Source: Octopus bimaculoides (Eukaryota). From it: DNA of 54,377 bases. Below are positions 13,713 to 52,961 of the stretch, in pieces; the first letter of the stretch is position 1; each line of letters begins with the position of its first letter. The stretch lies in NCBI RefSeq assembly GCF_001194135.2, contig NC_069004.1:298344-352720 (forward strand), written 5' to 3'. The position numbers and the translations under genes were made by a program. Under the pieces are notes generated by a model. That model was not told where the DNA came from. It searched no databases and saw nothing but the letters and a program-made list of their open reading frames with translations.

Positions 13713-14860
13713 AGTGACCTCAGCACAGATTCCATCCTTTCCAGGTGCCCTACCAAGATTCAAATTTACTTATTGATGTCATTACTTCCTCTATTGAGGG
13801 CGAAGAGTCTAAGGAGCCAATGATAGGTCTTTGTTGCATAGTATCAATCACTGTTTAATCCACAACTGACTCATGGTTTAGGAATTCAGAGAAGCGTTCG
13901 ATCCAGCGACCTGTGATTTCTGTTGATTTAGTAAACAGAGTGGAAGACTATTTGGAAAGCAAAGGAGCTGATGTGGAGCGCTTAGGTCCATAAGCTCGCT
14001 TCATAAGATGGTAAAGCTTCTTGCTGTCAATTGCATCAGCAGCAGCCTGAACATCACGAGCAAGAGCCTCCCACTAAGTGTTCTGCATCTTCCTAAGAGA
14101 TCGCTGCAGTAGTGATTTTACATTGTTATAGTGGGCAAGTGCTAGACTTCGCTGCACAGTAGACAGTTCTCTGTGTAGCAATACACTGTGAGCATGGCGC
14201 TTTACCACCAATAGTCGCTGAACTTCAGCATCATTTTCATCAAGCCAGTCTCTGTGTTTGGCAGTAACATATCCCTGTGTTTCTGCTGCACATTGTAGAA
14301 CGTGGTGTCCAAAATCCTCCCATGCTGCAGCAGTTTCAGTCCTGGACAAGCGAGTCTGAAGTTCTTTCCTAACCACAACATCATATACCTTGTGGACATT
14401 TAGACGGCGAGGAATGCTGACTGGTCCTCTTCTCTTTTTTACTCTAATTACCATTCAGAACTTTGCTCGCACCATTCTGTGGTCTGTCCAGCATTCCGAT
14501 CCATGAGAGGACATGACATTACAAATGTCATAGATGTCGCGCTTGCGGATGATGATACAATCCAGCAAGTGCCAAACTTTAGACCTTGGGTGCATCCACG
14601 TTGTTGTGTGATCACCTTTGTGCATAAAATGAGTGCTTGCAATGCAAAGTCCATGTTCTTCGCAAAGCTCCAGTAGCGTGAGACCATTGCTATTCGTTTT
14701 CCCCACTCCAAAACGTCCTAGAGAGCTCCATGTTTGCCATGGAGCAAACATGTTTTGAACAAGATCCCAGTCTGTTCCAAACCTGGCATTAAAATCCCCC
14801 AGTAGAATGACTTTATCAGAATTGGGGATTTTTCTAAGTATGGCTCTCAGCTGGGTATAA
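13712..14860 (-). mobile_element. RTE-clade LINE fragment: AP endonuclease + linker, frameshifted
   Basis: KVILLGDFNARFG, GVGKTNSNG..LLELCEEH, TWMHPRSKVWHLLDCII, WTDHRMVRAK, DWLDENDAEVQRLL, APGKDGI; several stops and frameshifts. Confidence 0.92.
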
Positions 14861-15397
14861 ATACCAGCGACAGGATAAATACCAGGTTTTACAAAACAGG
14901 TACTAAGGTCGATTTGTTCGAGTAAAACCCTGAAAGGTTGTACTCCAGCATAACCGCAGACCAATGGCTGAAACGAATAAAACAAAACTACATATTTCGA
15001 ATTGCCTCGGTATTACCCAAACAACCGTAATCCTCACTGCATTCAACATTTGCATTAAGATTTCGGATTTGTATTGTCTGCCCCATATTTTCTAACAAGA
15101 AAAGGTGGATCTATTTTAAAACGGGGGCCACATTTTTCATTAATGTTTTACGTAGTGTTTTTGGTACCGAAAGACTTTCAAACTTCGTATACTTATCTAT
15201 TTTGTGTTATAGAACAGAAAAATATTTTTGTATTCGAATTTATTTCATGTAAAAAATTGTCTTATTTCGATAATTTCAACCAATCACTGACAAGTATTCA
15301 GTTGTTTATATTTACTCCTTTGGCTGATTAAGCGATGTAAAGCGTATTTAATCTCCATACCTTCGTTTTATTTGCTTTTTTCATTTTAAATTTGCTT

Positions 15398-19273: not shown

Positions 19274-20405
19274 TTAGGTTGTCAAGAAAGTTCTTGTGGT
19301 TTTTAACCTTTAAATTTAGATGCACATATCTCGGCTCAAACAAAACTTTATTCATCGAAATAAACACCATCAGAATCAACACACTTTTGCCAATGCGGAA
19401 CAAGTTTAATTATGCCAGTAGTGTAAAAATCCTGTGTTCTGTTGGCGATGAAGTCATTGAAGGCGTGTTTGGCATGGTTTTGTTTTTGAAACATTTCTCA
19501 TGCAGGAAGTTGTAGAGATGCTTGAAAAAGTGGAAGTTGGAAGGCGAGAGGTCTGGTGAGTATGGCAGATGAGGCAGAGTTTCATAGCCCAATTTGTTCA
19601 ACTTCTGCAGGGTCAGTTGTGCGACATGCGGCTGAGCGTTGTTGTGGAGAAGAATTGGTCCTTTTCTATTGACCAATGCTGGCTGTTGTTGTCGGAGTTT
19701 CTTTTGCATTTCATCCATTTGCTGATAATACTTTTCCGCTGTAACGGTTTCACCTGGATCCAAAAAGCTGTGATGGATGAGACCAGCTGCAGACCACCAA
19801 ACAGTCACCATGACCTTCTTTTGGTGCAACTTTGACTGAGCTGCACTTTGCCGGTTGTGGTAAAGAATCCACTTTTCATCGCAAGTCACAATCCGGTTGA
19901 GAAATGGGTTGTTCTTGTTGCGTAAAAGAAGGAAAGACGACACTTCAAAACAGCGTCTGATATGTTACTTTATTGTCCTAATCTGACTTGTCGTGTTACA
20001 TCATTGTATTACAGGTTGGCCCTGATTTGAATGTCATTCTGATTTGTTGCTGTGATACAAATGTATCATTTGTGCGGCACCCATTTCTCAATTATTTTTG
20101 TTTTTCCAATCTCTTTCAAGTGGTTAGAAATTGTCATATACGTTACGTCTAATTTAGAAGCAAGCTCTCGAGCAGTTGTGTGTGGATTGGCTTCGTCTAA
20201 AGCTCTTAGTTGATCACTGTCAATATCCGATGGCCGACCACTACACTTATCATCTTCAAGACTCCGCTATGAAATTTCTTGAACCACAATTGTGCTGTAC
20301 ATTCATTACTGGTTCCTGGGCCAAATGCATCGTTGATATCGCGATCTGTTTCAGCAGCTTTTTAGCCTAGCTTGAACTGGAATAAGAAAATTGTGCGAAG
20401 TTGGC
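19274..20405 (-). mobile_element. Inactive mariner (Hsmar1-like DD34D) transposon, one TIR retained
   Basis: TA + ttaggttgtcaagaaagtt TIR at 19272-19300. Transposase remnants LRTIFLFQFKLG*KAAET...SGRPS...WVPH, IVTCDEKW, HNNAQPH, YSPDLSPSNF, WQKCVDSDGVYFDE*. The 2nd and 3rd catalytic Asp are changed to Asn; stops and frameshifts present. Confidence 0.93.
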
Positions 20406-23307: not shown

Positions 23308-23653
23308 TCATCATCATCATCATCATCGTTTAACGTCCGCTTTCCATGCTAGCATGGGTTGGACGATTTGACTGAGGACTGGTGCAACCGGATGGCTACA
23401 CCAGGCTCCAATCTAATTCGGCAGAGTTTCTACAGCTGGATGCCCTTCCTAACGCCAACCACTCAGAGAGTGTAGTGGGTGTTTTTACGTGTCACCCGCA
23501 CGAAAACGGCCACGCTCGAAATGGTGTCTTTTATGTGCCACCCGCACAAGAGCCAGTCCAGGGGCACTGGCAACGATCTCGCTCGAAAACCCTACAAGGC
23601 CAGTCAGGCGGTACTGGCAACGGTCACGCTCAGGATGGTACATCTTATGTGCC
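23308..23653 (-). mobile_element. Family B repeat (RTE 3' UTR-derived) with (GAT)n tail, young copy
   Basis: catcatcatcgtttaacgtccgc...ctacagctggatgcccttcctaacgccaaccac; CpGs intact. Confidence 0.8.
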
Positions 23654-27564: not shown

Positions 27565-27995
27565 CATCATCATCATCATCGTTCAACGTCTGCTTTCCAT
27601 GCTAGCATGGGTTGGACGATTTGACTGAGGACTGGCAAACCAGATGGCTACACCAGGCTCCAATCTGATTTGGCAGATTTTCTACAGCTGGATGCCCTTC
27701 CTAACGCTAACCACTCCGAGAGTGTAGTGGGTGCTTTTATATGCCACCAGCACGAAGGCCTGTCAGGCGGTACTGGCAATGGCCACACTCAAAATGGTGT
27801 ATTTTACGTGCCACCTGCATAGGAGCCCGTCCAGTGGCACTGGCAATGACCTCGCTCGAATGTCTTTTCACGTGCCACCAGCACAAGTGCCAGGAAGACG
27901 ACGCTGGTAACGATCACGCTCAAATGGTGCTATTTACATGCCACTGGCACGGAAGCCAGACAGCTGCTCTGGCAATGATCACGCTCGGATGGTTT
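27565..27995 (-). mobile_element. Family B repeat with repeated internal tggcacgtaaaa modules
   Basis: Near-identical to 23308-23480, then four ttt(t)a(c/t)(g/a)tgcca modules with variable spacers. Confidence 0.8.
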
Positions 27996-28414: not shown

Positions 28415-28860
28415 AGCACAAGTGTGGTGGAGTGGCAAGAAGTTTGTTTCCCAACCACATGGTTCTGGGTTTGGTCCCCTTGGCTGGAAGCTTACATAGG
28501 TGTCTTCTATTATAGCTCCAGACCAACCAAAGCCTTGTGAATGGATTTGCTTGATGAAAACTGAAAGAAGCCCCTTGTATATGAATATATTTATGTGTGT
28601 GTGTGTGAGGGTGTGTATGTATGTGTGTGTGTGTACCTTTGTATTTATATTTGTTCACCACCACCACCACCACCACCACTTGACAATCAGTGTTGTTTTG
28701 TTTACATCCCTGTAACTTGGTGGTTTAACAAAAACTGACTGATAGAATAAGTACCAGGATCAAAAAAATAAGTGCTACAGTTGATTTGTTCAACTATACC
28801 CTTCAAAGTGATGCCCCAACAAGGCCACAGTCTAATGACTGAAACAAGTAAAAGATAGAA
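28415..28860 (+). mobile_element. Family A SINE immediately upstream of the giant-exon acceptor
   Basis: Head, TG/CAC internal repeat and tail atgactgaaacaagtaaaaga. Confidence 0.8.
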
Positions 28861-28975
28861 TATAAAAGATAAGAGATAATAATTCACATAAAGTTTAAGA
28901 AAATAAGGAAAATCAATTATTTTAATTTTTTTTTTTTTTTGCTTTGTTTCTTTCAGAAAATCTATTATTGTGAAA

Positions 28976-31900
28976 ATGGGGCAGAATTTATCAACACTTC
29001 AGATAGTCCCTGTTCAGCCTGCTGGAAGAAGAAGGCATCCCATTTCAAGACAATATCATATTCCACATCAAATCCACAGCTTTCTGGTACCAGAAAACAA
29101 AGTTTTGCCGAAAGAAATTACTCACCGCAAACTTCGTCCAGTTTCTGTGCAGCTTGCAGCAAAAAATTCTGATTTTGCATCAATCTGGGGAAATCCGGTC
29201 ACGGTACTTGATGAACAAATTCGTTCAAGAATCGAAGGTTTGCAAAAAGGCTCTCCGGAAAATCACACTAAAAGTTTGGCAAACAAAACAAGGAATGAAA
29301 TAATTAACCATTCTCACTTAAGTGAGCAGGGTTGCAGTGGAGAGTCTTTATTAGATGCAAATGAAACAAATGATAATCCAAATATTAGTAAAAAAGAAAT
29401 ATTACCAGAAAATAGCCAGAAAAAAGAGACAGAAATGGATAATTTGAAAGAAGGGAATAACTTTCAATTATTTCAACCAATGAATCTGTACAAAATATCC
29501 AGAACACAAACAAAGAGTTCAGAAATGATGCCATCAGAGCAACAAATGAAATATTTACCTTCAAATGAAATTTCAAATCATTTACCATATTCAGATTATC
29601 AGACCAAGACATCATCAGTTTTTTATTCGACAGCTAACAATGTGAATAACCTGAAAAACAAGGCACCAATTGCTTCTTTGCCACAAAAGAGCAGTTTCCC
29701 AGTGGACCAATGTTATTCTCTTACATATGCACAGATGGCTGAAATTCGCCGACAGAAACATTCCAACATGCCTACACATGAGAATAATTCTATTTCTCCA
29801 AATCTTCAGCCTCAAGCAAAACCATTGAATGTATTAGGTTCTGAAAGTAATAATTGCAACAGGAATCGTCAAAAGAAACGTCAGGCTCCTCTCCCACCTC
29901 CACATGCAAATAAGTCTATTGGTCAACCAGTGAACTCACTGTTTACATCTGACACAGGAACCTGTGACAATAGTCAAAATGTCTCTTCAAAGTCTTCATG
30001 CCAGATTATCCCCTTTACAGCTAAAACTGATCATGAAAAGTGTACTTTTCAAACACAAAATCTTGGCATATCAAATCCATCAATGATATCTCAATTTAGC
30101 TGTAAACCCAAAGTAGAAGTTATATCTGAAACTAACAATTTCCAGTCAGCAGGAAAAAACTCAGATCAAAGCTTTTCTGAGACCAGAATTATTTCTGATA
30201 ATGTTATTTTAATGAAACAAACAAAAAGTAACTTTCATGAAAACTTGACTGACATGGACTCACCTGGTGATCGTTGTTTAAGTAAAACAAACCAACACAC
30301 TAACCAACAGCATATCTGGCAGAAAAGACTTAACTGTAAGGTTTCTAATGAGTTTAAATCAGCACCAGGTGTAACCAGGAGTGATTTCCACACCAGGTAC
30401 ATCAATTTCGGTTCCTCAAATCAACAAAATCAACATGATAATCACAGGAAGTCCCTACAGTCAGATAATGTTTACAATGTTCAACCATACTCAAGACCCT
30501 ATGTCCTAACCCCATCAGGTACCATGCTGACCTCTTGCCCAGTGGTCATAAATGATTCTTCCCAAACCAATCATGTTAATGCAACAAATGCACAGAGTAA
30601 GGCTGAAGTTCAGTTTTCTGAAAAAACTAAAAAAAAACAATATTTTTCTCCATGGAACAATAATTGCAATCTTCCTTCAAACAATCAGCATTACTCTTCA
30701 AATAATCTACAGGCGAATGATGAATCTTCGAGAGTAAGTGAGACTTCAGATAAAACATATCCTTCACTTTTAAAACTTTCTATATCAACATGCCATACAA
30801 CACCTAAATATTTTTCATCCAAAAGTGACCTGACTAATACAACAAATTCTATGGCATCTTTTGAACTTGATAGTGATACCTACCAAAGATATGGATCATT
30901 GGCATCTTCAGCTTCTTTGGATCGGTCAAAAGGCTTTAGTCTGGCCACTGCAGAAGAAATGAAAATGTCACAGACTTCGGAATATACACAAAATGTTTGT
31001 TCTGCTATACCTTGCAATCAACAAACAAGCGAGATAAAGACAAACAGGGAGGTAAGTCCAGATCACAATGTTCTTTCCTTTCCAAAGGTAGATTCTGGTA
31101 ATGGTGCTGAGAGATGTCAAGAAACTAGACAAATGGAATTTCGATTTGCACCTGAACTGAACCAAGCGTTCACAGAAAGAGATAGTTACATGAGAGAGAA
31201 TTGGCAGTTGAGAGAACCATTACAAACAGTCAATTCTCTTGTTGAAACCAACGCTATGGAATTCTCAAAGCCTAAATCAGCAGCTCCACCCCCACCCCCA
31301 CNNNNNNNNNNNNNNNNNNNNNNNNNNNNNNNNNNNNNNNNNNNNNNNNNNNNNNNNNNNNNNNNNNNNNNNNNNNNNNNNNNNNNNNNNNNNNNNNNNN
31401 NNNNNNNNNNNNNNNNNNNNNNNNNNNNNNNNNNCCACCACCACCACCACCATCATCATTAGGCAGAACATTAAATTACTGTCCCCCTCTTCAAAGAGAA
31501 TTAATAGACCAAAGCAGGCAAAATTCTCTCCCTAGCAGCATTTCTAAGACAACCATTTCATCCAACATTATGAAAGGACTAGAAGCAATCTTCAAAGAAG
31601 ACATCATAGAAGCTCGGAATAGCTTAAGATCAACGAAAAAGCAAGAGAACTCTGATTCTGTAAAACCTATGAAAAAAGATCTGCATGATGCCTTCTATTA
31701 TGAACTGACACAGACATGTTTGACCAGACAGAAAAGATGGCAGGAAGAAAAGTTTAGCAAATTACCAAACAGCAAAAACCAAATTTTGGGTAATGTTGTG
31801 GATAAAACCAAAAAACATACAGAAGACTTACTGGATAAAAATGCAGCAGAAAAATTTAATAAACTATCTGCAAACAATTCCTTCAACTCAAATTCTTCAG

Positions 31901-33506
31901 AAAATCTTAAAATCAATGGAGATTTTAAAAATCACACATCTTTAAACCAACCCAAGCAGCCTAATTTGAAAAGCGAAACGCAGAAAGGAACTGACTCTGC
32001 AAGATCAACAAATGACTGGACTCCAATGCAAGATCTTGAAGATTCAGAAAATTCTGATACAGAGAGTTCTGTGAAAAATTCTCAAAGAAACAGCACAACT
32101 GGTTTTAAATGTAGTCTTATTCCTGAAAATATAAAATATCTAAATAACACAAAGGAATTTTATAGCAGAAACTGTCCCAAGCCAGAATATGATGTCACAA
32201 AGCATTCTTTCACTTGGAAGAATGAACAAAGCTTCATTAAGTCAAATTCAAATAAATCCAAAAATGGTAAAGAACCCAACCCTAAAACATGTGAAGTATC
32301 TGAAAATATTGGTTGGGATAAATCGAGTGCAATGAAAAGTAATTCAAAATATAAAAATGGAATAGACTTTGATTATTTGGAAAAGAAAACTGGTAGAATG
32401 TCAGAGCAACATCATTTAGGCAGAGTTAAGCATGAGGGAGAGAAAGAAAAAGAAAATGATAGTCAAAGAGGATGGAATGTTTGGAAAAAGCAGAAGAAAT
32501 TTCCCAAAGAATCTACTGTAAATACGAATGAAAAGCAGCAACTTAAGGTGACAGAATCACAAATTAGCCAAAAGGAAGAAGATATGGAAAAAGAAAGACT
32601 GAATCAAATGGAAATAGAATCTGAATTCCTGAAGAAACGGTCAAATCAGAGATTGGTAATGGGTAATTGGAAGAATAAATTAACAAAAGTTACTAAACAG
32701 TCATTAGCAGGAATGTATGATTTGGAAGAGAATAGAAAGAACTACACTAATAATGATGAAAAAGAAGCTGGATTCAATGAAGACATTACAAAATGCAATA
32801 AGAACACAAGGAAAGAGAATGAGAAAGTAAATTCTAAGAATGAAGTGAACTTTGATAAAACAAGAGCTCAGCTTCAGGAAAACTCAACTTCACTGAACGG
32901 GAGTGCACAGAATCACACCCAATACAGTGAATCTGTAGTTTCTAATAATGAGGGACTAATAAATGATATTCTTTTGAAACCCCAAATTGAAAAACAAAAT
33001 GCAAGCATTTATTTCCCAAATTCTTTAGCACCAAATTATGTCCCAAATCCATTTTTAGGTATATCATCCAACTATTTTGGTACCTCCTATCTCAATGAAT
33101 ATCTGAAGTTAGTTGGTATTGGGCAACCATTTCTACCAATGAACCTTACATATCATAATATTCCTGGATATTTAGGAACTAGTTACAACATGATGCCACA
33201 GGCAACCGATATATATGAAGGTCCAAATTTTGTGAATCCTTTGCCATTTTTACCTTCAGTCTTCAATAATTTCTCAGCTATGAGTGAGTCAAAATCCAAA
33301 GATGTACAGAACCCAGTCTACACAAGTGACAGTGATGATGCTGATTCATTGTACCAATCTCCAGGAACCTATACAGACCAAATGAGTAACTGGAGTTCAG
33401 ACAATAGCAAGAGTATCCAAACAGAAGATCTAGACAATTCTGACAGTACGCAGTCTTCTGATGTTTACATGTTTCAAGCAAATAAAGAACGAGACGAGGG
33501 TTTTGA
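28976..33506 (+). CDS. Giant coding exon (exon from 28957) of an uncharacterised ~1,530-aa low-complexity N/S/K/E-rich protein
   Basis: Acceptor (T)n-gctttgtttctttcag ends at 28956. ATG at 28976 is in strong context (aaaATGg). The frame is open to the N gap 31302-31434 inside a CCA/CCC poly-Pro run. After the gap, the frame PPPPPPSSLGRTLNYCPPLQRELIDQ...SNI-MKGLEAIF joins ORF 31570-33510 with no stop, so only the estimated gap length shifts the frame. Donor GA|GTAAGT at 33506/33507. Confidence 0.85.
31302..31434. other. Assembly gap inside the poly-proline tract of the giant exon
   Basis: 133 N flanked by ccacccccac and ccaccacca. Other gaps: 5456-5556, 9256-9502, 15459-15969, 16976-17131, 22170-22608, 23654-24067, 24925-25024, 52962-53041 (approximate). 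Confidence 0.98.
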
Positions 33507-34933
33507 GTAAGTAGATTTCAATTGTTTTAGGAATGTTGGGTGGAGTGAGGTAGAAAGTATAGGTGGAAGTAAAAAGACAAAACAAAATTTCAGTAGGAGT
33601 CAGTCCAAATTAATTTCTTTAGTTATTATTTTTGGTGGGGGGGTGGGGGTTCGTTTCTTAGACTCAAGTCAACTCTGATGAAGTAAACTTAAAATCAGAA
33701 GAATTCAAGCCAGGATAATCCTATCTTTTTAGGGATTATCTAATATTACATTATCCAGTATGTCCTTTGTAGTTTTAGGGTGTCATTTAATGGAAATTTG
33801 TCTCCTATTTTTAGCAGTTTGAGCTACAACATACAAGGTCTTTCATTGGTCTGACTACCATCCAGAAATGGTTATAACTCAGAAAAGAAAAATGGAAAGC
33901 AGCTTCGTTTTATCCACTGGTTTCTTAAAATAAACTTTTTAATTGAATGACAAGAATATAATAATGATTAAACATTAATTATTTCTGCTTATTTTATCAA
34001 GATTCAAATTATATATTAATAGAATAAAGTCTTTCTTATTCTTTTTAAATGATGAAGATTTTCAATTGGTTTGATGCAGACAAAATCAATGTCTGTAAAA
34101 AGTTTACTTTCCAACCACACGGTTCTGGGCAAGTGTCTTCTGCTACATTCATTCATTTTTGTGGTTTTATTTATACTATCAACAATTGTAATGACTTCAT
34201 TTTTATTATTTAAAAAAAAATTATGTAATTTAAAAGAGTAAAATATTCTTTTTGCTATTCAAATACAGTTTGAATATTTAGTGATTATACAAATAGAGAT
34301 AATTAATGTTTAATCGCTAAGATATTCTTATCTTTAAACTAAGCGACACCTCTTTATATAAGATATTTAGAGGAGGAAGAGCAATGAGTGGGCTTCACCA
34401 TTTTAAAACCTCTCCCACTGCTCAGGTTCTGAATTACATCACCAACTGGAATGAGACGACTGGGCACAGCTGTTTGGATACTGGAGATTTGACATGGCTA
34501 ACTGGGAATTGAATCTGTTTTGGCAACAGTACTTTTTGGCACTAGAGGTAAACATACATGCACATGCATGCAGAAATATACAAAGACAATGCAAGAGAGA
34601 GAGAACGACAGAAACATTTAAACAAGAGAAACAAATAAAATCAATGTTGAACTAGCGGTGCCAAAATAGGTGGCACCACCTAAATAATTGAGCTAAAATG
34701 TTTAATTTTTATGAGTGCTGTGCTTTATAAGGTTAAATCGAACATTCCTCTGAAAAAGACTCCAGTCCATTGCAGAAGATGTTTAATACGTATCATCAAT
34801 TTCAGTAGGGATCCAAGAATTAGACACAAAAATTATCTTCTGAATTTTTTTATACATTTATTTACCATTTTCAATGTTTTAATTATTTCATTTATATATG
34901 TATTGTTGTTTATTAAACTACTGAATTATTTTT

Positions 34934-35002
34934 ATAATCTATTTCTTATATTTTTTATAATCTATTTCCTATATTTTTTATAATCTATTTCTTATATTTT
35001 TT
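34934..35002. repeat. Three tandem 23-bp units (ataatctatttcttatatttttt) directly upstream of the last-exon acceptor
   Basis: Units at 34934, 34957 and 34980, with one substitution in unit 2. Confidence 0.92.
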
Positions 35003-35017
35003 ACTTTACTGCAACAG

Positions 35018-35096
35018 TTCAGGAAATGCTTTCTCATCAGAATTTGAAACAATGACCTCTCAAATGAAGTACTCAAAACTGGAAGAACTAAGCTGA
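35018..35096 (+). CDS. Predicted terminal coding exon of the giant-exon gene: (D)SGNAFSSEFETMTSQMKYSKLEELS*
   Basis: Acceptor ttttttactttactgcaacag ends at 35017. The phase-2 join GA+T gives ...DEGFD-SGNAF. Open to TGA at 35094-35096. ATTAAA at 35312. Confidence 0.65.
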
Positions 35097-40191: not shown

Positions 40192-40243
40192 TCAGTAAGA
40201 CATCACTGATTCAATAGTTTTATAGTTCTGACTATTCATTGCT
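40192..40243 (-). CDS. CFAP96: CFAP96 last coding exon: (K)AMNSQNYKTIESVMSY*
   Basis: Acceptor ttgttttcttgcag, phase 2, TGA at 40194-40192. Matches the family C-terminus ALNSKNYKT...SY as I recall it. Confidence 0.88.
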
Positions 40244-41385
40244 CTGCAAGAAAACAATATGTATCACAGGATTAATAAAGTTTACATTTTGCTAACATAT
40301 TAATTTTTTGTTTATGATTAACATAATTTTATTTCTGTAATTTTTGTTGTTGAAAATCTTAACATTAACCCATTAACTTTCAGATTACTCTGTCAAATGT
40401 AATGCTTATATATGTATATTGTTGTGAATTAATCACATATCTCATAGCTGTGAAATTTCAATGATGTAATTGTTCAAGTCTAGAATAACATTGTTAGGTA
40501 GGTGTGAGAGGTCAGATCTGGCCAGTTTGGACATAAAACAGATATAGCTGGTTAAGGCATGATGGCCACAACACACTGACTGGAAGCAGTGAAAGAGTAC
40601 AGACTAAATGATCATGAAGTCAAATACACACATGTGTATGCATTTATATATGCATACACAAATTGGAGTCACAACCAAACAGAAGATACCTGCCCAAAGT
40701 GTCATGCCGTGGGATCAAATCTGAAAGCATGTTGTTGCAAAATGAACTTCATAATTGTACAGCCATGCCTACAAGACATGATCACATCATTAAGAAACTC
40801 ACTTCCCAATCACATGATTTCAGGTTCAGTTCACCAGCATGGTACCTTGACCAAGTGTTTTCTACTATAACCTAGGCTAACTAAAGCTTAGTGACTGAAT
40901 TTGGTAGATAGAAACTGAAATAAGCCTGTTGTGAGTGTGTGTGCATGCATACGTGCATGCGCACATGTGTGTGTGTGTGTGTTTCCTTGTCGTTATACTG
41001 CATGGTAGTTGTAAACGAGTGTCATTCATTTCTAGTCTTCCATGAAAACATGTCTGGCCATGGAGAAATATTAATTTCTTAGAAAACAAACAGGGGTTAA
41101 TGAAAGGAAGGGTGTCCAGCTGTAGAAAATTTGCCTCAACAAATGCCATTTGGTTCATGCAAGCATGGAAAGATTGCATGTTAAAACAATGATGTGGGAG
41201 AGGTGACAGTGATGATGATGATGGTGTTAGAGATGTGGACTCTGCAGTTTGGAGTGCAGGCTGTAATTTCAAGAAAGAAACCAATACAAAGTAGAGACAA
41301 CTCTTTAGCCCTGCTCTAGACAATTTCTATGATGCAGGTGACACAATATAATGCCCACACTGGTGGTGCTGGCTGATCATTAAAT

Positions 41386-41652
41386 GCACCATCTGAACAT
41401 GGCGGATTCCACTGCCCCACGAACTGGCTCCCATGTTGCTGGCTCATCAAAAGCACCATCCGAACATGGCAGATTCCACTGCCCCACGAACTGGCTCCCA
41501 AGCTGCTGGCTCATGAAAAGCACCATCCGAACATGGCGGATTCCATTGCCCAACCAACTGGCTCTCCTGCTGGTGGCTCATGAAAAGCAACATCTGAACA
41601 TGGCAGATTCCACTGCCCCCTGAGCAGCTCCCATGCCTGTGGAATATAAAAA
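41386..41652 (+). repeat. 67-bp minisatellite, four units, inside a family B element (41340-41830)
   Basis: gcaccatc(c/t)gaacatggc(a/g)gattcc... starts at 41386, 41453, 41520 and 41587, then the normal family B body gcacccactacactc follows at 41653. Confidence 0.92.
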
Positions 41653-42819
41653 GCACCCACTACACTCTTGGAGTGTTTGGCATTAGGAAGGGTGTCCAGC
41701 TGTAGAAACCTTGCCATATGAGTGTAGTGCTTGGTGCAGCCTACTAGCTTGCTAGTCCTTAGTCAAACCATCCAACCTATGCCAGCATGGAAAATGGACG
41801 TTAAACGATGATGATGATGATGATGATGAAAGGATGAAAGTCAAAGTCTACGTTGGTGGCATTTGAACTCAGAATATATGAATGGACAAATGCCACTAAG
41901 CATTCTGTCTGGTATGTTAATGATTTTGCTAGCTCACTGGTTTACTAAGAACTAAGACTTCTAAGTTACTTTTTAGCCTTGCTGTAGACTGCACACTCTC
42001 TCTAGTTACCTTCAGTGATATGATAATATACACTAAATCAATGCAGTCAAGTGAAAGATATCTTTGAAGACTAATCCAAACTATACAATCATGGGCAAGA
42101 AAAAAATATGGTGGTGGTGGTCATTGTCGTCCTTGACAATGTTAAACAACCAATCGCAACCACTTGGGTTTTATAGTGCAGGTTGTACTACTCACTCTTT
42201 CAGTCTCTGAATACCAAATGTTGCTCGTGAGACCTCTGTATTTGGGTGATATTCCTGAGTCACCCTCTCCCCTTTGAGCACCAGTCCATTGTAAAGTGGA
42301 CTGGGTAAACCCACAATCATTGTGGGTTTACAAATAAACACCCGTGTCAAAACAAAGTGTATCTTATAGTATTTATTCTATGAGTGTCACATCTCTACAT
42401 GCAGTAAAAGGACCTAATCATTCAATAAATACAGCTCAATAAACATAATACCCAACAAAGAACAAGGATAGATATAATCGACTTCAAACAATTCCTTGAA
42501 GGTGTTTGCCCAAGCATGGCTACAGTCCAAAGACAATACTAGCAAAAGTAGTCCTCCTCTACTTCATCATCAACATCATTTAACATCTGTCTTCCACCCT
42601 GGCATGGGTTGGATGGTTTGACAGGAGCTGGCAAGCCAGAGGACTGCACCAAACTATACTGTCTCTTTTGGCATGATTTATATGGTTGGATGCTATTCTT
42701 AATACCAATCACTTTACAATGTGGACTGGTTGCTTTTTACATGGCACTAGTGAGATCTATTTTGGCATGGTTTGCATGGCTGGATAAAGATGTATAAAAG
42801 AATATTAGTTGTGACTTAC

Positions 42820-42998
42820 TTTAGTACATTTTGCTGTAAAATTGAAGTGGTTGGACGAGACTTTCCTTGCTTGAGAGGCACAAACACATTTCCTGATTTG
42901 TTGACAACATGTACAGGTCGACCTTCCTTCACTTTGACATATTCATTCACAGAATGTGTTGGGTAACGTTCAAATGTACCAGCCTTCATACCTCCATC
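42820..42998 (-). CDS. CFAP96: CFAP96 exon: DGGMKAGTFERYPTHSVNEYVKVKEGRPVHVVNKSGNVFVPLKQGKSRPTTSILQQNVL(K)
   Basis: Acceptor ctaatgcttccag, donor gtaagt, 179 bp (phase 0 to 2). Contains the GGMKAGTFxxYPxHS and KSRP motifs. Confidence 0.92.
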
Positions 42999-43134
42999 CT
43001 GGAAGCATTAGAACATCAAATATCAATACATCAAAATTTATTTCCTATAAAGAAACAGACTGTAAATGCACAACTGACCTCTAAGCAAGGTTCACACACA
43101 CACACACACATGCATGCATGAAAACATCTTTTAT

Positions 43135-43655
43135 CGCTTACTTGTCTCAGCCTTGTAGGGTTTAGGTGAACAAATTGATCTTAACACTCATTTTAAAGTT
43201 GGGTATTTATTCTCTTTTGCCAAACTGCTAAATTATGGGGATGTAAACACATTAACACCAGTTGTTAAGTGGTGATGGGACACACACACACACACACAAC
43301 AGTACTAGGATGAAACCCTACTGAGGACAAAATCCCCCAGCAGTTAATATCCTCTGGGATATTGTTCTTTCTTTACAATAAAAATATTTTAGAAAAGTGA
43401 AATTTTATGAAAAATTTTAAATATTTATTAGTTGACATTTTTGTTAAAATTTGTCCAGTGAGATTTTGTCCTCGGGAGATTTTGTCCTGATACCAACACA
43501 TACATACAATGGGCTTCTTTCAGCTTTTGTCTACCAAATCCACTCACAAGACTTTGGTTGGCCCAAGGCTATAGTAGAAAACACTTGCCCAAGGTGCTAC
43601 ACAGTGGGACTGAACCCAGAACTATGAGGTTGGGAAGCAAACAGCTCACCATGCA
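43135..43655 (-). mobile_element. Family A SINE interrupted by a MITE
   Basis: Tail 43135-43280, CA run, insert 43302-43493, head 43510-43655. Confidence 0.8.
43302..43493. mobile_element. 192-bp MITE-like element with imperfect ~36-bp TIRs
   Basis: Left gtactaggatgaaaccctactgaggacaaaatccccc versus reverse complement of right gtatcaggacaaaatctcccgaggacaaaatctcac. Flanking caaca duplicated (43297-43301, 43494-43498). Confidence 0.7.
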
Positions 43656-44199
43656 ACTATACCTGTACTGTTAGTTTACATTCTCACTAGGAAATGGGAC
43701 AGTTGGATCATTGTTAATACTAAAACCTTTCCTGGAGAGGAATATACAGCCTAACCTAGATTAGAGGCCAGTGAATTCAGAGTTAAAGCTCGGTACATCT
43801 AGAAACAGAAGATGATATGAAGAAGGAAGGTACGGAAGCTAAAAGACTACACATTTGGGAATAATCTTAGGAATATGACAGTTAGGAAGAGGATTTAGAT
43901 ACAAGGAGAAAAGATGACAACTAGGAATTTCTCTGAAATAACTTGCTTAGGGCTACCAATCCAACATTTGGCTGAGACTTTGGCCCAGCTAAACCAAAGG
44001 TGATGTGTTGGTGGAATGTCACCATTAATTGAGTAATAAAGATCTAAGAGGTAGGTTTGAATAATCTGTAAAGAAGGTGATAGTAGGGAGTGTTATCAAA
44101 AAGCAAGAAGGTCAGCTGGGCAAGGATATACTTGGCTATAGGTGAGGCAGAAGGGAAGGGATTTGTCCTGCAATTCAGAGGTGTGTAAAGGGTTCAGGA

Positions 44200-44350
44200 T
44201 TTTGAGATGCCATTGGAGAGATATATATTCAAAATGACGAAACATACTCAACACCACTGTGAAAGACAAGAAAGTGGCATAGGAGTGCTATTATGAGAGG
44301 CTATTGAAAATGAAGAAAGCATGATATAAAGAAGGACTACCACATGCTGA
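44200..44350 (+). mobile_element. Degenerate RTE LINE linker fragment
   Basis: KKVA*ECYYERLL...EGLPHADPTEG resembles the RTE AWxxxYERLLN...LPxxDPxEGP segment. Confidence 0.5.
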
Positions 44351-44602
44351 CCCTACTGAAGGTCAGTTTACAGGACTCAATAATATTCTCTTCAGCCCAT
44401 CTAACTTATTTCCATGGGGGGAAAACTCTTGTATTCCTCCTGTGTTCTAAGGGGCCCTCAATCACATCTTAAGCAGCTGCACCAAGGCACTGAGTGAGAT
44501 ATATCATCACACAGAAACATGATTAAGTCCTGAAGACCATCCTTGAGGCAATCAACTAGGGGATTAGCAACAGCAAAAATATCAGCACTACAGCCAGAAG
44601 TA

Positions 44603-44745
44603 CAGGACTGGGTAATGGAAGTTGATCAGGAGAAACAGTTGAAATGTTCAGCACATATCACACAGACGTTGCAGAGACCAGATATCATGCTGGTTTTTTA
44701 AGTAATAAAGCAGCTAGTGCTATTGGAGTTAACTATGTGAAAAGC
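44603..44745 (+). mobile_element. Hero-like (R2 superfamily) restriction-like endonuclease fragment
   Basis: QDWVMEVDQEKQLKCSAHITQTLQRPDIMLVF*VIKQLVLLELTM* matches the DW.L.VDL..QL.FP.HI..T.LRPD...LLELTVPWE pattern. Confidence 0.68.
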
Positions 44746-45648
44746 AGGGGTTGATGGAGGAGTGTCACAAGAATGGGTGAAGAGCAAGTTGTTTGTCAGT
44801 GAAGGTTAGCAGTTGATGGTTAGTAGGTTGTACTCTTAGTAGGAACTATAGCAAACTCCAGGCATTTCAGGAGCTTACAGAAGAACTATCAAGAACAATG
44901 TAAAGTTGACGAGAAAGAATCTAGATGGTTCTTGCTGCAAAGAGGTGACTGGTGGGATCAGCAGAATGCCACTTCAATACAGATCTAGGTTTGTTCAGCC
45001 TAGATTGAGTTACCTGGAAGAGGGTATGAGCTGTAAGACTTAAAACAACCAGTAATTCCATGATACAACACTGACAAAATGTCTAAGTATTGTACCTATA
45101 GATGCATGTTGAACTGAAATACATACATTTATTATAATGGCATGCCATTGGTTATGACAATGAGTCTTCCAGTTGATCTGATCAACAAAACAGCTAGCTT
45201 GTGAAATTGATATGCAGGTGGACGAGCATTCCACAGACATGCGTACCCTTCGCGTAGTTCTGAGGGAAATTCAATCTGACAAGAATGTGACAAGACTGGA
45301 CCCTTTGAATTACAGGTACAACTAATTTTTGCCAGCTGAGTGAACTAAAGCAACATGAAATAAAGAGTCTTGCTCAAGGTCACAATGTGCCACCAGGAAT
45401 CAAACTCTTGACCACGCATCATAAGCTGAATACCCTAACAACTAAGCTATGTTTCTACATACATAAGTATATACACATATACGAGGGGAAGCAGAAAATG
45501 AAGTGTTTTACTCAAGACAGCAACATACCACCTGGTCTGGGAATCAAAACCATGATCTCATGATTGTGAGTGTAAAACCCTAGTTACAAGGCCACATGCC
45601 TTCACAGGTTGATAGATAGAACAGAAGAAAAACTCAGGTTTAGGTTAC

Positions 45649-45843
45649 CTTGTACCCCACGTTGCTTGGAATAAAAGGTTTAAGGGGTTTCAAAGGCTTC
45701 CGCTTCTCATCAATGCTTTTGGGTTTTGATAGGGTAATACCTGATGGTACTTTAAAAGGGTTAACTGTAAAATACTCCTCTGGATGCATGTTTAACCTGA
45801 AAGGTCCATTCTTCATTAATGTCTTGTGATGCTTATATTCTTT
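45649..45843 (-). CDS. CFAP96: CFAP96 exon: KEYKHHKTLMKNGPFRLNMHPEEYFTVNPFKVPSGITLSKPKSIDEKRKPLKPLKPFIPSNVGYK
   Basis: Acceptor ttctctttcag, donor gtaacc, 195 bp (phase 0 to 0). Contains the PFxLNxHPxxYFxxNP motif. Confidence 0.9.
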
Positions 45844-47969
45844 CTGAAAGAGAATTAAAAAAATAGATAAATAAAAAGAACAATATTGAGCATCAAACTA
45901 TAATTAACTAATTTGAATTTATTTTAGATTTCTAATAAATTCTGTTTTGCATAAATAGTAATTATCTAATCATACAGTCAACAAATGTATTTTTAGTGTA
46001 TATTTAGCCCAGCTATTACAGCTAAGTCTACCTAGTCAGTCATTGGTTAGCATTTGTCACATGTATATCATTGTTTTGTTTGCCAATGTGTAGCTTGTAG
46101 CAAACACATACTTCATTGATAGAGTTTGCTCAGTCTCATCACTGACTGGCACAAGATGTATACCAGGTATCTTTAATTGGTTATTTGTTTCACTGTGCTT
46201 CCCTACCATTACTCTTTCTCTCTCTCTCTCTCTCTCTCTAATTACATTAGCAATGTAATAAGGGAGGGTATCATGTTGGAATTATGTGTATTAGATCCTT
46301 GCTTAACACCGACATTTTTGTATTGCTGACTATCACTCTTTTTTCCCCATTAAGCCATTCAATAGTGACATCCTCTTGCCATCACCCATCTTCAATGCTA
46401 TCCATCACTCTGTCATACTACTTCCTTCTCTATTATTCATTGTTGACAATCATCACTATCTCTCTCCCATAACACTCTTTACCATGCACCTTCTCACCAT
46501 CACTTTCTCTCATTTCCAGCACTGTGTCTTCTATCACCCAATCTCCCTATTATCACTCTCTTTACCCCTCATTACATAACTCATGCTATTTCCATTGAAT
46601 ATCCTTACCAGCAACTATTATGCAGCAGTCTATCACTGTCTCTCTTCCTTTATTCTCTCTCATGTCACCCTCTCACTCCTGTGTACCTCTGTGCAGTGGC
46701 AAACTGGCCAGGTTGCCAGCTTGCCCGATGGCATGTGGGCCCCTGCACCATTAGAATCCATATATATGGGAGCCCATGTTAGTATCTAAGGAGCCCATCC
46801 TTTCAAATTTGAGAATTTTTTATTCACTCCTGGAAGAATGCGTCAATTATGTCAGCTTGGCTGTGTTTATAAACAGTTGAAAAGAATACTTTTAACAAAA
46901 AAAAAAAGAAATTAACTGATAGCACTGTAGTTGTGGGTGAGCCCCCTTGTAGTCGCAGGTAGGATCCCCACACCCACACCCTATTTTTCTAACCAGGTCC
47001 AACACGCATATTCTTGTTACTTGTGAGTCTATCCTAGCACTACACCATCTCTCTTCTACTCTCTCTTACACTTTTGACACTACTCTCTCTCTCTCCTTTT
47101 CTTGTTTTTCTTCTGACTAGGTAACCAAGTATCACCTTTACATTAGCACACTTGTCTCTGGTCTCTTTCTTGTACCTTTCTCTTGCTCTCTATCTCTTCT
47201 CTCTCTCTCTCTCTCTCTCACTGGGTAACCATGTACCTCCTCTATAGCAAGACACCTATTTCTGTCTTTCTATTTGTCTGTTACACTTTTCATCATTTGA
47301 TACTGGTTCACCTACACTAATGCCCCCTTAGTTGTGGCAAGACACCTGCTTCTGTCTCTCTGTCACACTCTAACCTTTCATCTTCTGACACAAGTTTCCC
47401 TCCTCAAACGCCCCCTTCCCCTCTCATAATTTCTTGTCTTGTGATGAGTTACTTGGTTACCCTGTCAGTGCTGGTGTCACATTAAAAGCAGCCAGCCCAC
47501 ATTGTAAAGTGGTTGGCATTTGGAAGGGCATCCAGCTGCAATAATCATGCTAAAACTAACTTTGCCTGTGCTAGTGTTACATAAAATGCACTAACTGCAC
47601 TCTGTGGAGTGGTTGGTGTTAGAAAGGGTATCCAACCATAAAATCCCTGCCAAAATAGCCACAGTAGCCAAGGGTCGTTTTTCTACCTTGCCAGCTCCTG
47701 TTATCCATCCTACCCATGGAAGATAGATGTTAAACAATGATGATGATGATGTATATGTAGGTCATTTTTCAGTTTTATTTCAAGATTTCTTGCCAACAGA
47801 GCAGGAGTCGGTTTCTAACCTAGATCCAAGGCTCCTTCATTGGAATTTCAACATCAACAACAGAGTATTTTTGTATGCATGTATGTATACATGCAGATTT
47901 GTATGTTTTGTTTTATGTATATCTTCTCATGCATATATTTGCATATCTAGACGTGCATATATGCATACT

Positions 47970-48225
47970 TAAGTGATAAACTTCAAGAAAGTTTTACAGA
48001 TTTTAACAGTTCGAATGAGGGATTGGATCTGTAGTCTTCGAATCAACTTTCTCCTTTCTGGTTTTGGGAAGCCTAATTTCTCAAAAGTGGTATTTAAGCA
48101 GTGTGTTACATATCTTAGTGCCCCAATAATTACAGGTATAAACCTGAACTCGTAATCTGGATAGAATAACTGCAGATTTCTCAATAATTCAGCATAGGTA
48201 TTCTCTTTTTCACTGATCTTCAGAT
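47970..48225 (-). mobile_element. R4/Dong-type non-LTR element, C-terminal fragment
   Basis: KISEKENTYAELLRNLQLFYPDYEFRFIPVIIGALRYV...LIRTVKICKTF is the end of an RLE domain (K..KY..L, P++IGALG). Confidence 0.75.
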
Positions 48226-48600
48226 GTATGTATGTGTATGTATGCATGCATGTATTATGTATGTATGTATGCATGCATTCATTCATACATGCATGTATGT
48301 ATGTACGTAGGATAGGCTTCTTTCAGTTTCCACCTACCAAATTCACTCATAGGGTTTTGGTCAGCTCAGAACAATGGTAGAAGACACTTCCCTAGGGTCC
48401 CACACAAGAGATGGATGAGGAAGGGGGCTTTCTGTGTAAAAAAAACAAACAAACAGAAGATGAGAGTCTGGACTCTAAAAATCAATCTTGCTTGTTATTC
48501 TTTTTTTTTGATTTGAAAAGTTTTGAGAGTAAACCTGCTCTAAATAGGAATGTTCAACTGTTTATTTGTGTAGTATAACCAGATCACTTCCAATACTAAC

Positions 48601-48676
48601 CATATAGTCATCTTTACATTCTGAGATAGGATCAGACAAATACTTTGGATAAGGATTGAGTGTAACCTCAGCATAG
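48601..48676 (-). CDS. CFAP96: CFAP96 exon: YAEVTLNPYPKYLSDPISECKDDYM
   Basis: Acceptor ttttctcttttttag, donor gttagt, 76 bp (phase 2 to 0). Exactly bridges the phases of the flanking exons and continues GYG-YAxxT. Confidence 0.82.
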
Positions 48677-49902
48677 CTAAAAAAGAGAAAATATATGATA
48701 TATATTATATATATAAACTGACAGGAAGATACACACACACACACACACACATTTAAGCAAGATTATATATAAATAAAATAACAGAAATCAAACACCGAAG
48801 ATGCAAAGAGCAACTTGCCATCCCCCCTCCCCCAACCCTAACTCTCCCCTGATATAAATATTCCCAGCACTCTTCTACATCACCCTTGGCCTGAACAGCC
48901 ACCCTCAGGCACCAGCACCCTTCGCACTCATCTAGATGAAGAGGCTCAATCACTGGCTACAGATCTGCTACTTGAATACAAGTTAATGCCGACAATATAC
49001 CTAGAGTTCTTTTTATCATACTCACCTGATGAAATGCATCTGCCAGTATTGCTGAATAGTAGTAATTAACACACTTTGTTGTTTGTAATACATCCAATCA
49101 TGAACAGCTGATAGTGAGGTATCAAAACAATTGTAATAAAGTATGATCAATCCATTTTCTCTTTATAAACTCTATGAATATTTACAGATTTCCACATGTA
49201 CATCCAGTGAAAGGCTATCTCCAGAAAACTGGAAAATGCAGAAATCCAGGACACTTCTAGTTCCAAGCTCACTGGATAATTGGTCTAGCATTGTATTGGG
49301 TTGTCACATAAGTTTGTTTGTTTGTTTTTTTTCTATTTATTTTAATCCTTTCAAATGTTATTTAAATTACCATGAAAAATATTCTAACATAGTGTTTTAT
49401 GATCTTTTTTTAGCAGCTCTATTTTTCCCCATACAACTTTTGGTTATCATTTTTGAAATTTGAATAAATTTTACTTTATTTCAGAAATATGATCTGGGAT
49501 GTGAATAAGAAAAAAAGAATTGAAAGAATTTATCTGGCAATCCAGTGTATCTAAATTTGTAGAACTATGCAAGCCATTCAAGCAGAGATTAATAATTAAA
49601 TGAATATTTTCATTGTACTATTTTCTTTTTCTTTTTAGCACCATTCTTCCTCTAGAACTTTTATTTATCATTTTTGATATTTGAATAAGTTTTACCTTAT
49701 TGCAAAAATATGATGATAGGGTGTAAAAAGAAAACTTTATCTGTACAGTATAGTACAAGTTATTAATTAAATAAATTCAGAGGAATATTCCCCACTACCA
49801 ACGTACACAATCCCACACCATTAAGAAAACCAATAACCCTAAAACAACTCTCAGTTGAACAATCAATCATTCATTTAATTTAAAAAAATGCTTATAACTC
49901 AC

Positions 49903-50040
49903 CCATATCCTGTGCCTTTTTTGGGTGGATTCGTGAAAATATTTCTTGAAGATGGTTTGAAGGGTGGTGCAGGCTTTGGTGTTGGACTCAGAGCAGGAAT
50001 TGGACCACCAATTGTTCCATAGTAAGAACCAACTCCACAA
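49903..50040 (-). CDS. CFAP96: CFAP96 exon: CGVGSYYGTIGGPIPALSPTPKPAPPFKPSSRNIFTNPPKKGTGYG
   Basis: Acceptor tttgcttcag, donor gtgagt, 138 bp (phase 2 to 2). Contains the conserved CGxGSYYGTIGGP and TNPxKKGTGYG motifs. Confidence 0.92.
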
Positions 50041-50544
50041 CTGAAGCAAATGATATGTGGTAATAATAAACGTCTAATTAATAACAGAAACTGATCTAAG
50101 GGAAATTACTCTAGACAGCCAATATCGATTTCGAAAATTCAGGTTGGTAGTTAATAGAATTATTTCCATTGTTCCGTAAAATTTCCTAGTGTTGTGTAGA
50201 AAATAGCTTCACAACCAAATGGTTCTGGGTTCAGTACTACGATGTGATACCTTCAGCAAGCGTCTTCTACTATAACCCCGGCCTGACCAAAACTTTATGA
50301 GAGGATCTGATAAATAGATGCTGAAAGAAGCCTGTCCTATATATATAAAGAATGCAAAAAATGGGACAAGGACGTAACAGGTGGCAACAAAACATCCAGA
50401 CAGTTAGATGATACAAAAAGGGACAAGAAAATACAAGGACAGGTCATTTTTGTTGTGATGTTGAGAGATTAACAGAGAATGCAGGCAAGGAGGAGGAGGA
50501 AGTAAAGCACATTCTCAAAGTAACACAAATAAAATATTACTCAC

Positions 50545-50752
50545 GATGTTTTAAATCCACTACTTGGAATGAATTCCTTTCCCAGGTTTTTCTTAGACTC
50601 TTTCTGACTGTATTGGCGTGCCAACCTTACTGGATCACAATAAGCTTCCCCTTCCATGATACGGGAAAATGTATCCGTAAAATAACCAGCTTGTGTAGCA
50701 GATATTTTTTTCACACCAGGAACATAAAAATTTTTACCTTTTATGTGTGGAC
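50545..50752 (-). CDS. CFAP96: CFAP96/C4orf47 (UPF0602 family) internal exon: GPHIKGKNFYVPGVKKISATQAGYFTDTFSRIMEGEAYCDPVRLARQYSQKESKKNLGKEFIPSSGFKTS
   Basis: Acceptor ttttgtttcaaag, donor gtgagt, 208 bp (phase 1 to 2). QAGYF..F.RI.EGE.Y and KKNLGK.F.PS.G match human C4orf47 as I recall it. Confidence 0.88.
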
Positions 50753-50804
50753 CTTTGAAACAAAAGTAGGATAAAAACAATAATAATAACAATAATAATG
50801 ATGA

Positions 50805-51210
50805 TGATTTCAAATTTTGGCACAAGGTTAGCAGTTATGTGGGGAGAGGATTAGTCATTTGCATTGACCCCAATTCTCAAATAGTACTTATTTTTATCAA
50901 CATTGAAAGAAGAGATGCAAACTCAACCTTGGTGGAGTTTGAACTCAGAATGAGAAGAGTTGCAAGAAATACTGCTAAGCATTTTGTCTGACACACTAAC
51001 GATTTTGCCAGCTCTGCACCTAAATAATGATAATAATAATAATCCTTTCTACTATAGGAAAAAGACCTGAAAATTTTGTGGGATGGTGGGGGGAGGCTAA
51101 TTGGTTTATTTGACCCCAGTACTTAACTAGTACTTCCTTTACCAACTCCAAAGAAGAAATACCATTAAGCATTTTGTCTGGCATGCTAACAATTCTACCA
51201 GCTCACCACT
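50805..51210 (-). mobile_element. Two adjacent degenerate family C SINEs
   Basis: caaattttggcacaagg...gagtttgaactcagaa...ctaagcattttgtctg at 50805-51010 and a deleted copy at 51030-51210. Confidence 0.7.
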
Positions 51211-51269
51211 AATTAATATTAATATAATAACAACAACAACAATAATAATGTTGCTGTTGTGTTGAGGAA

Positions 51270-52220
51270 GAAACATGCCTAGGTACAAGGGAGGAAGAGG
51301 CTTCATAACATGAAAGATCTGTGCTGTGAATGAGAAAAACAGTCTGGGATGGTACGTTGAACAGCAGATTGAAGCCTTGCTTGTTGCATGTTTGAAATAG
51401 CAACATGATACCTACCAAAAATGTGACACATTCAAAGACATTTAAAAAAACAAGATGAAGAACAAAGATTAAATAACTGGAAAATGAAAACAATGCATAG
51501 GTAATACTTCAGATAAATTGAAGGTCATTGACAAGACCAACACTTGGAGGTGGCTAAGAAAAAGTGATCCGAAAGGATGCATTGAGGCATTGATATGCAG
51601 CACTCAGGAAGAAGCTCTGAGAACTAATTACACCAAACTCGAAATAGTTAAGAGCAGTGAATTTCCCCTTTGTAGGATGTGTGACAAGAAAAACGAAACA
51701 ATACCACATGTTGTGAGTGGGTGTAGCAAATTGGCCCCAAAAGAATACAAAAGGTGGCATAATAATGTGGCTAAGTTTGTTCACTGGAGGTTGTGTGAGA
51801 AATATAGTCTTTAGAAAAACACAGAAATGGTGTGAACATGAGCCAGAAGACATCACTAAGAATACTGAATATAATATCTTGTGGGATTTTACAATCCAAT
51901 GTGACTCTCTAATAGATGCTCAACGACCAGACATTGCTGTAGTAAATAAAAGGGAAAAGAAAACTAAGATTATAGATGTTGTTGTACCAGGGGATACAGA
52001 CGAGCTAGAAAAGGTGAAAAAATACAAGTTACTAAAAGATAAATTTACAAGACAGTGGGCAATGAAGAGAATAACTGTCATCCAGTAGTTGTAGGGGTAC
52101 TGACAGCACTAACAATGAAGTTTGAGAAATATGTCAGAGAAATTGGAATTGACATGATGGTAGAGCATGCTCAAAAAACTGCTCTACTCGGGACAGTGAA
52201 GATTTTGAGATTGATATTTA
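51270..52220 (+). mobile_element. R4/Dong-type non-LTR retrotransposon 3' fragment (CCHC knuckle + RLE), frameshifted
   Basis: PRYKGGRG; LICSTQEEALRTN; CRMCDKKNETIPHVVSGC; KRWHNNVAKFVHW; ILWDFTIQCD...RPDI.VV...IIDVVVP; QKTALLGTVKILR. Confidence 0.92.

Positions 52221-52915: not shown

Positions 52916-52961
<46 letters not shown>

Follow-up and report, generated by a model that had tools for sequence, protein, structure and literature searches.

The window analysed here is a stretch of 54,377 nucleotides from Octopus bimaculoides (CM046624.1:298344-352720), and all positions below are counted from its first letter. On its forward strand lies a very large coding exon, 28957-33506, which together with a short last exon, 35018-35096, is almost certainly one protein-coding gene of this species; we give the overall explanation set out below a probability of roughly 0.7. 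The gene structure is well supported, and the function is what we infer. The most likely product has about 1,491 residues plus the prolines encoded within an assembly gap. The structural features of the gene are as follows.

28957-33506 (+), large exon, with a written length of 4,550 nt that counts the gap of 133 N; a T-rich tract and the acceptor AG (28955-28956) precede it
28957-28975 (+), probable 5′ untranslated region of the large exon, upstream of ATG 28976
28976-28996 (+), probable start and N-terminus MGQNLST, in the context gtgaaaATGg; XP_014787096.1 starts likewise
31052-31057 (+), internal consensus donor GAG/GTAAGT, used by NCBI isoform X1
31286-31452 (+), proline run broken by the gap: five CCN codons plus C at 31286-31301, 133 N at 31302-31434, six CCA codons at 31435-31452
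33507-35017 (+), phase 2 intron, GTAAGT...CAACAG
35018-35096 (+), coding part of the last exon, which completes Asp (GA/T) and continues with SGNAFSSEFETMTSQMKYSKLEELS to the stop TGA at 35094-35096

Two stop-free runs on the forward strand, one of 798 codons (28907-31300) and one of 691 codons (31435-33507), flank the gap. The third-longest such run in all six frames of the window spans 310 codons and belongs to a retrotransposon reverse transcriptase (RT). At the window's stop frequency of 5.2%, the probability of meeting no stop is about 1e-18 over 798 codons and about 1e-16 over 691 codons, and 26-82 stops interrupt each of the remaining five frames over this DNA. Codon-position bias is alike in both halves, with AT-rich third positions and a third-position G+C content of 0.28 and 0.29. 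In a repeat scan of the window, no interspersed-repeat copy and no microsatellite was found within 28957-33506. An earlier note, made from the letters of this DNA, had placed two long open reading frames (ORFs) here and remarked on a 4-kb exon free of repeat insertions in a window rich in transposable elements (TEs); both observations hold.

The same surroundings, saturated with repeats resembling short interspersed elements (SINE-like repeats) and with long interspersed element (LINE) and mariner fragments, might suggest that the ORFs derive from a transposon or virus, or that they are a recently dead pseudogene that is still open. We give this origin almost no chance, as the exon carries neither a repeat copy nor terminal repeats nor similarity to TE proteins, is spliced at consensus sites, and has a relative expressed in cuttlefish larvae with a ratio of nonsynonymous to synonymous substitution rates (dN/dS) of about 0.2.

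The phase of the two ORFs at the gap reveals how they are related. On the 5′ side, the open frame reads GCA GCT CCA CCC CCA CCC CCA C and then runs into Ns; on the 3′ side, a codon begins at 31435, and six CCA codons are followed by TCA TCA TTA. Only in the two open frames do both flanks encode proline. No stop interrupts the 45 codons between 31435 and 31569, which confirms a statement of the earlier note. The frame forced by the gap as written instead reads eight His residues and reaches a stop at 31460. A written length of 133 is of the form 3n+1 and therefore breaks the frame, whereas a true length of 3n+2 would restore it; the flank phases thus bear out the joining condition that had been proposed. 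The corresponding sequence of the newer assembly GCA_001194135.2 is identical to 21570-45096 of the window (23.5 kb; CM046624.1:319913-343439), gap included, and NCBI files both halves under the single gene LOC106881281.

A cuttlefish relative reads through a proline run of its own. The Sepia proteins (P0081 and P0083-P0086) come from Logan contigs of SRR25097170, SRR25158142, SRR23936173 and SRR25158132, and are assigned to Sepia esculenta on the grounds that two of these four run accessions occur in a paper on S. esculenta larval transcriptomes. The homologous ORF is unbroken from the 5′ end of all six contigs through a run of 15 to 18 prolines (P15-P18) into the conserved C half. Four contigs (L001, L002, L006 and L007) hold coding sequence upstream of the run, amounting in L001 to at least 511 residues, and the other two (L003 and L004) start in the run or just before it. 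The length of the run differs among contigs, always by whole codons. That two Sepia contigs break there too suggests that this proline repeat is hard to assemble. Because the phase logic, the unbroken Sepia ORF and the single NCBI gene agree, we join the halves: with high confidence, the two ORFs are halves of one exon put out of frame by a gap in a (CCN)n tract. The single frame across the gap that had been suggested for this DNA is thus supported both by the four cuttlefish contigs with upstream coding sequence and by the NCBI gene assignment.

The locus is not new to the databases. XP_014787098.1 (P0080) is isoform X2 of LOC106881281, an "uncharacterized protein" of 671 amino acids (aa) that comprises the C half and the last exon; it starts at Met 31570, ends exactly with the last exon 35018-35096, and is 100% identical over C-half residues 46-691. 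XP_014787096.1 (P0087), isoform X1 with 701 aa, starts with MGQNLS, follows the N half to residue 692 and is 100% identical over 89% of it, then jumps from 31051/31052 to 35018 in another frame and ends with the tail FRKCFLIRI before a stop. A further database entry (P0082, 716 aa) begins with PPPPPP right after the gap. The RefSeq isoforms use the start codon, the donor 33506/33507 and the acceptor 35018 of the present gene, but neither is full length: X1 makes an out-of-frame splice, and X2 begins 45 codons past the gap. The joined product of about 1,500 aa was not found in the protein collections searched, the 646-aa read-through ORF, looked up as an exact sequence, gave no match, and a literature search with the gene and protein accessions and with ERR4030425 and SRR9969967 found nothing. 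The label "unassigned" in the earlier note therefore stands in part: the protein is uncharacterized, but it is already annotated by RefSeq as two partial isoforms. What is already known is an uncharacterized RefSeq locus in the form of two partial products; what is new is the single-ORF model in its corrected form, a relative in cuttlefish, the selection evidence and a list of conserved islands.

These records leave two other accounts of the locus to be weighed. In the first, the N- and C-half ORFs would be translated apart, as separate genes or as X1 and X2, with a stop, frameshift or intron hidden in the gap. It is true that the databases hold only separate models, X1 with 701 aa and X2 with 671 aa, that a perfect internal donor (GAG/GTAAGT, 31051/31052) serves X1, that the N half cannot be matched significantly to the N part from Sepia, and that the gap sequence itself is unread. 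Against this, both ORFs meet the gap in proline codons in what are the only open frames, the X2 Met at 31570 is preceded by 45 open codons while P0082 begins with PPPPPP at the gap, and the Sepia transcripts are continuous in every contig that reaches the run, four of them with upstream coding. Nor is the internal donor special, since GTRAGT occurs three times in the large exon against about two expected by chance (a rough calculation). We regard two separate products as very improbable.

The second account keeps the full-length protein and adds a genuine splice at 31052, which would yield a truncated 701-aa isoform consisting of the myristoylated N half without the polyproline run or the C half. 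Its basis is the consensus donor GAG/GTAAGT, joined to 35018 in XP_014787096.1. However, the tail FRKCFLIRI arises by reading the last exon out of frame, and the X1 splice removes the gap, as is typical of automated gap avoidance. Such an isoform is unlikely, although it deserves more credit than two separate products.

In the full-length gene, the large-exon acceptor consists of a T-rich tract and CAG/, its donor is TGA/GTAAGT, and the last-exon acceptor is CAACAG/; the strong exon borders and the phase-matched last exon described in the earlier note are both supported, the latter by NCBI X2, which has the same 35018-35096, and by the retention of DSGN...SE.E in Sepia. Six open codons lie between the acceptor and ATG 28976, and no non-repeat ORF was seen upstream of the large exon in the window. 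An upstream coding exon is not needed, and translation likely starts inside the large exon at ATG 28976. At the other end, retention of the intron would terminate the product in ...DEGFE at TAA 33508-33510, with AATAAA at 33929 and 34023. Since DSGN...SE.E is conserved across the junction in Sepia, the acceptor at 35018 is favoured over intron retention. The first canonical-type poly(A) signal thereafter is ATTAAA at 35312, a candidate. We note that a 23-nt unit, TTTTTATAATCTATTTCTTATAT, is repeated 3.3 times at 96% identity over 34929-35003 and forms the pyrimidine tract of the last-exon acceptor.

Relatives of this protein are few. When the C half was run as a single sequence in an exhaustive HMMER search of 1.84 billion representative proteins, two matches came back at E<=1e-3, namely the protein itself and its Sepia counterpart (P0081, E = 2e-13). 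The N half, submitted to a word-indexed protein search whose negatives are unreliable for a low-complexity query, gave no match besides its own isoform X1. The C halves of octopus and Sepia are collinear and share 31-32% identity, with a Smith-Waterman z of 30.5 against shuffles. Homology of the N halves is, by sequence comparison, not demonstrated; the best local match would set the Sepia contig start near octopus residue ~70. The Sepia gene call has only 694 residues, yet in each of the six contigs the frame is open right from the 5′ end. The Sepia N part measures at least 511 residues, its 5′ end missing, as compared to 770 residues before the prolines in octopus. Both share the polyproline run, the MKGL helix, the basic patch with its helix, NPxY, WSSD...STQSS and the C-terminal DSGN. 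About 50 residues past the Sepia run stands MKGLQLIQRDDILAARSSLRS, the counterpart of octopus MKGLEAIFKEDIIEARNSLRS after the gap.

The conserved islands, together with the sequence motifs and the predicted helix discussed further below, are the following.

29024-29038 (+), basic cluster GRRRH, following MGQNLST
29879-29902 (+), RQAPLPPP, a class I SH3-type motif RxxPxxP, from the sequence
31570-31641 (+), conserved island MKGLEAIFKEDIIEARNSLRSTKK, in Sepia MKGLQLIQRDDILAARSSLRSRKD, lying some 45 residues past the proline run; holds the X2 start Met
32011-32136 (+), islands N(D)WTPxQDLxD (32011-32043) and GFKxxLxPxNIK (32101-32136), from the octopus-Sepia alignment
32482-32640 (+), conserved basic patch W-K/R-x-KKK...STV..NE, then the helix S.I...E..ME.ERL.Q...E.EF.K.R, from conservation and AlphaFold2
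32524-32895 (+), helix predicted by AlphaFold2
33094-33459 (+), C-terminal islands within a tail that is first aromatic-, Pro- and Asn-rich and then acidic and Ser-rich
33094-33111 (+), N-[DE]-YLKL, C-terminal island
33304-33360 (+), VQNPxYTSD, an acidic run and S-[LI]-Y-x-S, containing the NPxY motif
33391-33459 (+), WSSD...DLDNSxSTQSS, C-terminal island

The order of the invariant islands is polyproline, MKGL..I...DI..AR.SLRS, NWTP.QDL.D, GFK..L.P.NIK, W.xKK....STV..NE with its helix, N.YLKL, VQNP.YTSD with the acidic run, WSSD...DLDNS.STQSS and DSGN...SE.E.

Between the S. esculenta contigs and a contig of ERR4030425, to which no species is assigned, dN/dS is 0.16-0.21 at a dS of 0.063-0.076 over 808-840 codons. 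Within S. esculenta, each pair of contigs shows 0-9 synonymous and 0-4 nonsynonymous differences. A dN/dS of 0.16-0.21 and mostly synonymous differences point to purifying selection; judged by this pattern, the family is a functional coding gene that is constrained and nevertheless fast-diverging over deep time. As found so far, the family appears to be restricted to coleoid cephalopods, that is, octopus and cuttlefish. Purifying selection, which had been deduced from the intact exon, is thus supported in Sepia lineages, and the expectation of a fast-evolving, lineage-restricted protein agrees with one non-self match among 1.84 billion proteins, some 30% identity, and N halves that can barely be aligned.

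The product is predicted to be almost entirely intrinsically disordered. Ser (12.7%), Asn (10.6%) and Lys (8.6%) together make up 32% of the joined product. Pfam returned no family for either half, for X1 (P0087) or for the Sepia ORFs, and six isolated conserved segments gave only noise at E >= 0.06; the best of these matches, Codanin-1_C at E = 0.062, was dismissed as such. Other disordered families encoded by large exons, namely NHS, GRIN_C/GPRIN, DUF4592/CRACD and Tankyrase_bdg_C, were considered and gave no Pfam profile match. In the PDB, neither single sequences nor a profile found anything below E = 0.77. AlphaFold2, run on single sequences without an alignment, gave the N half a mean predicted local distance difference test score (pLDDT) of 34.8, with 750 of 775 residues below 50, and the C half a mean of 44.4, with 514 of 691 residues below 50. 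The only confident element is a helix (pLDDT 72-88) at C-half residues ~370-420, which coincides with a conserved island. A disordered protein in which no folded domain was recognised, as first described from the letters of this DNA, is what these searches and models return.

One activity that the layout might suggest is that of an actin-assembly factor, in which the polyproline run would recruit profilin-actin and the helix MKGL..I...DI..AR.SLRS would bind G-actin as a WH2 motif. Layout and spacing are reminiscent of modules of the WASP/WAVE, Ena/VASP and Cobl type, and the L-R-S-[TR] at the end of the helix bears a loose likeness to LKKT/V; 13 positions of the helix are invariant between octopus and cuttlefish. 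However, neither Pfam WH2 (PF02205) nor other actin-binding models matched at E<=10 when isolated segments of both species were searched, and the protein halves gave no WH2 match at E<=1. The hydrophobic residues are also not spaced as in the WH2 consensus, and at a position that WH2 fills with Val, Thr or Ala the Sepia sequence carries Arg. Having failed the Pfam profile test, the WH2 or actin-nucleator reading is improbable, and we keep it as a minor rival.

Short motifs offer a different view of what the protein may do. The N-terminal MGQNLST conforms to the pattern for N-myristoylation, G-{EDRKHPFYW}-x(2)-[STAGCN]-{P}, following the logic of PROSITE PS00008 at an N-terminus, which a random Met in this composition would do with a chance of 0.4-0.7%. 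Sepia has a similar APLPP, for which homology to the octopus RQAPLPPP is not shown. NPxY, DSGN...S and the helix show no change from octopus to cuttlefish, and the C-terminal DSG(x)4S is conserved. Other candidates were set aside: NPF (EH-domain) and SxIP (EB1), though present in octopus, either lack conservation in Sepia or appear no more often than chance would give, and RPEL, an AKAP RII-binding helix, a clathrin box, a PDZ ligand and PPxY were absent or did not fit on motif scan and inspection.

From these patterns we tentatively propose that the product could be an N-myristoylated, membrane-tethered disordered docking scaffold bearing short linear motifs (SLiMs), a proposal we rate as possible and distinctly less probable than the gene structure. 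In such a scaffold, the following roles might be distributed along the chain: (I) an N-terminal myristoyl-glycine and the nearby basic cluster would hold the protein at a membrane, (II) the disordered chain would display its short linear motifs and thereby recruit partners, (III) RxxPxxP and the long polyproline run may engage SH3, profilin or EVH1-type binders, (IV) NPxY beside an acidic Ser-rich stretch may engage PTB-type or phospho-dependent binders, (V) the conserved basic patch and helix may serve self-association or partner binding, and (VI) the conserved C-terminal DSG(x)4S could place turnover under the control of phosphorylation.

MARCKS, BASP1 and AKAP12/gravin are myristoylated, natively unfolded membrane scaffolds. 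The octopus protein resembles them in its N-terminal MG...S with basic residues, its extreme disorder and its putative reliance on short motifs, and resembles AKAP12 also in its very large coding exon. Unlike them, it has no sequence similarity, effector domain, RII-binding helix or Pfam match that would connect it to these proteins, and the resemblance is one of architecture only.

Several points weigh against the reading of a single gene with a docking function. The join rests on phase logic and a cuttlefish relative rather than on O. bimaculoides sequence across 31302-31434, and the Sepia contig L001 needs a 1-nt correction in an A7 run near its 5′ end (~470-485), where the frame change in a homopolymer probably reflects misassembly. 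Similarity between the N halves is marginal (Smith-Waterman z = 2.1, a score reached by 11 of 300 shuffles). Every functional motif is a short pattern of a kind common by chance, and the Sepia contigs are 5′-truncated and hence give no view of the MG start. The evidence for a restriction to cephalopods consists of one HMMER run with the C half as a single sequence and one word-indexed search with the N half; a word-indexed search with all 1,491 joined residues did not even find the protein's own entries, X1 and X2. The single-sequence mode of AlphaFold2 itself lowers confidence. The actin reading, although it failed its profile test, stays on the list of rivals.

The practical use of the gene model is an annotation fix: one reference gene has been split into two partial "isoforms" by a gap in a proline-codon repeat, and the same repeat breaks some cuttlefish transcript assemblies. 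The corrected model of about 1,500 aa, with its start, junctions and relative, is directly usable. The locus also documents a taxonomically restricted disordered protein of which only short islands are kept between octopus and cuttlefish, yet on which purifying selection clearly acts. Genes of this sort are candidates for a cell biology peculiar to cephalopods. The family is undescribed but of a common type, that of disordered proteins confined to one lineage; the gene is an ordinary orphan gene, and there is no pointer to a new mechanism or to a long-standing question.

A bolder extension would see a family invented in coleoids and kept for ~250 million years that acts as a myristoyl-anchored docking platform with polyproline and NPxY, sited for instance at the cortex of neurons or of other cells specialised in cephalopods. 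We consider this speculative and unlikely, more so than the scaffold proposal. If it were true, NWTPxQDL, GFKxxLxPxNIK and WSSD...STQSS would be new binding motifs.

Beyond the large gene, the window contains a neighbouring gene on the opposite strand. This gene, at ~40192-54000 (-), encodes a protein resembling CFAP96 (Pfam PF15239), which the gene call of the collection gives as 308 aa; likely exon ORFs lie at 45640-45816 and 50541-50825.

Transposon remnants stand at 53444-54343 (-), 14074-14985 (-) and 19410-19943 (-). One is an RT fragment of a non-long-terminal-repeat (non-LTR) element, whose best matches are 54-58% identical and which an Octopus vulgaris protein matches at 87% over 20% of the query; the other remnant ORFs, judged by eye, look like the N-terminus of a LINE endonuclease/RT and a mariner-type transposase fragment. 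SINE-like repeats of several families occur in both orientations, at 265-404, 5065-5204, 28423-28606, 43512-43651 and 48315-48454, at 23312-23382, 27565-27738 and 41649-41822, and at 28805-28871 and 53295-53361; one copy ends ~85 nt upstream of the large-exon acceptor. The window holds nine N gaps, mostly inside microsatellites.

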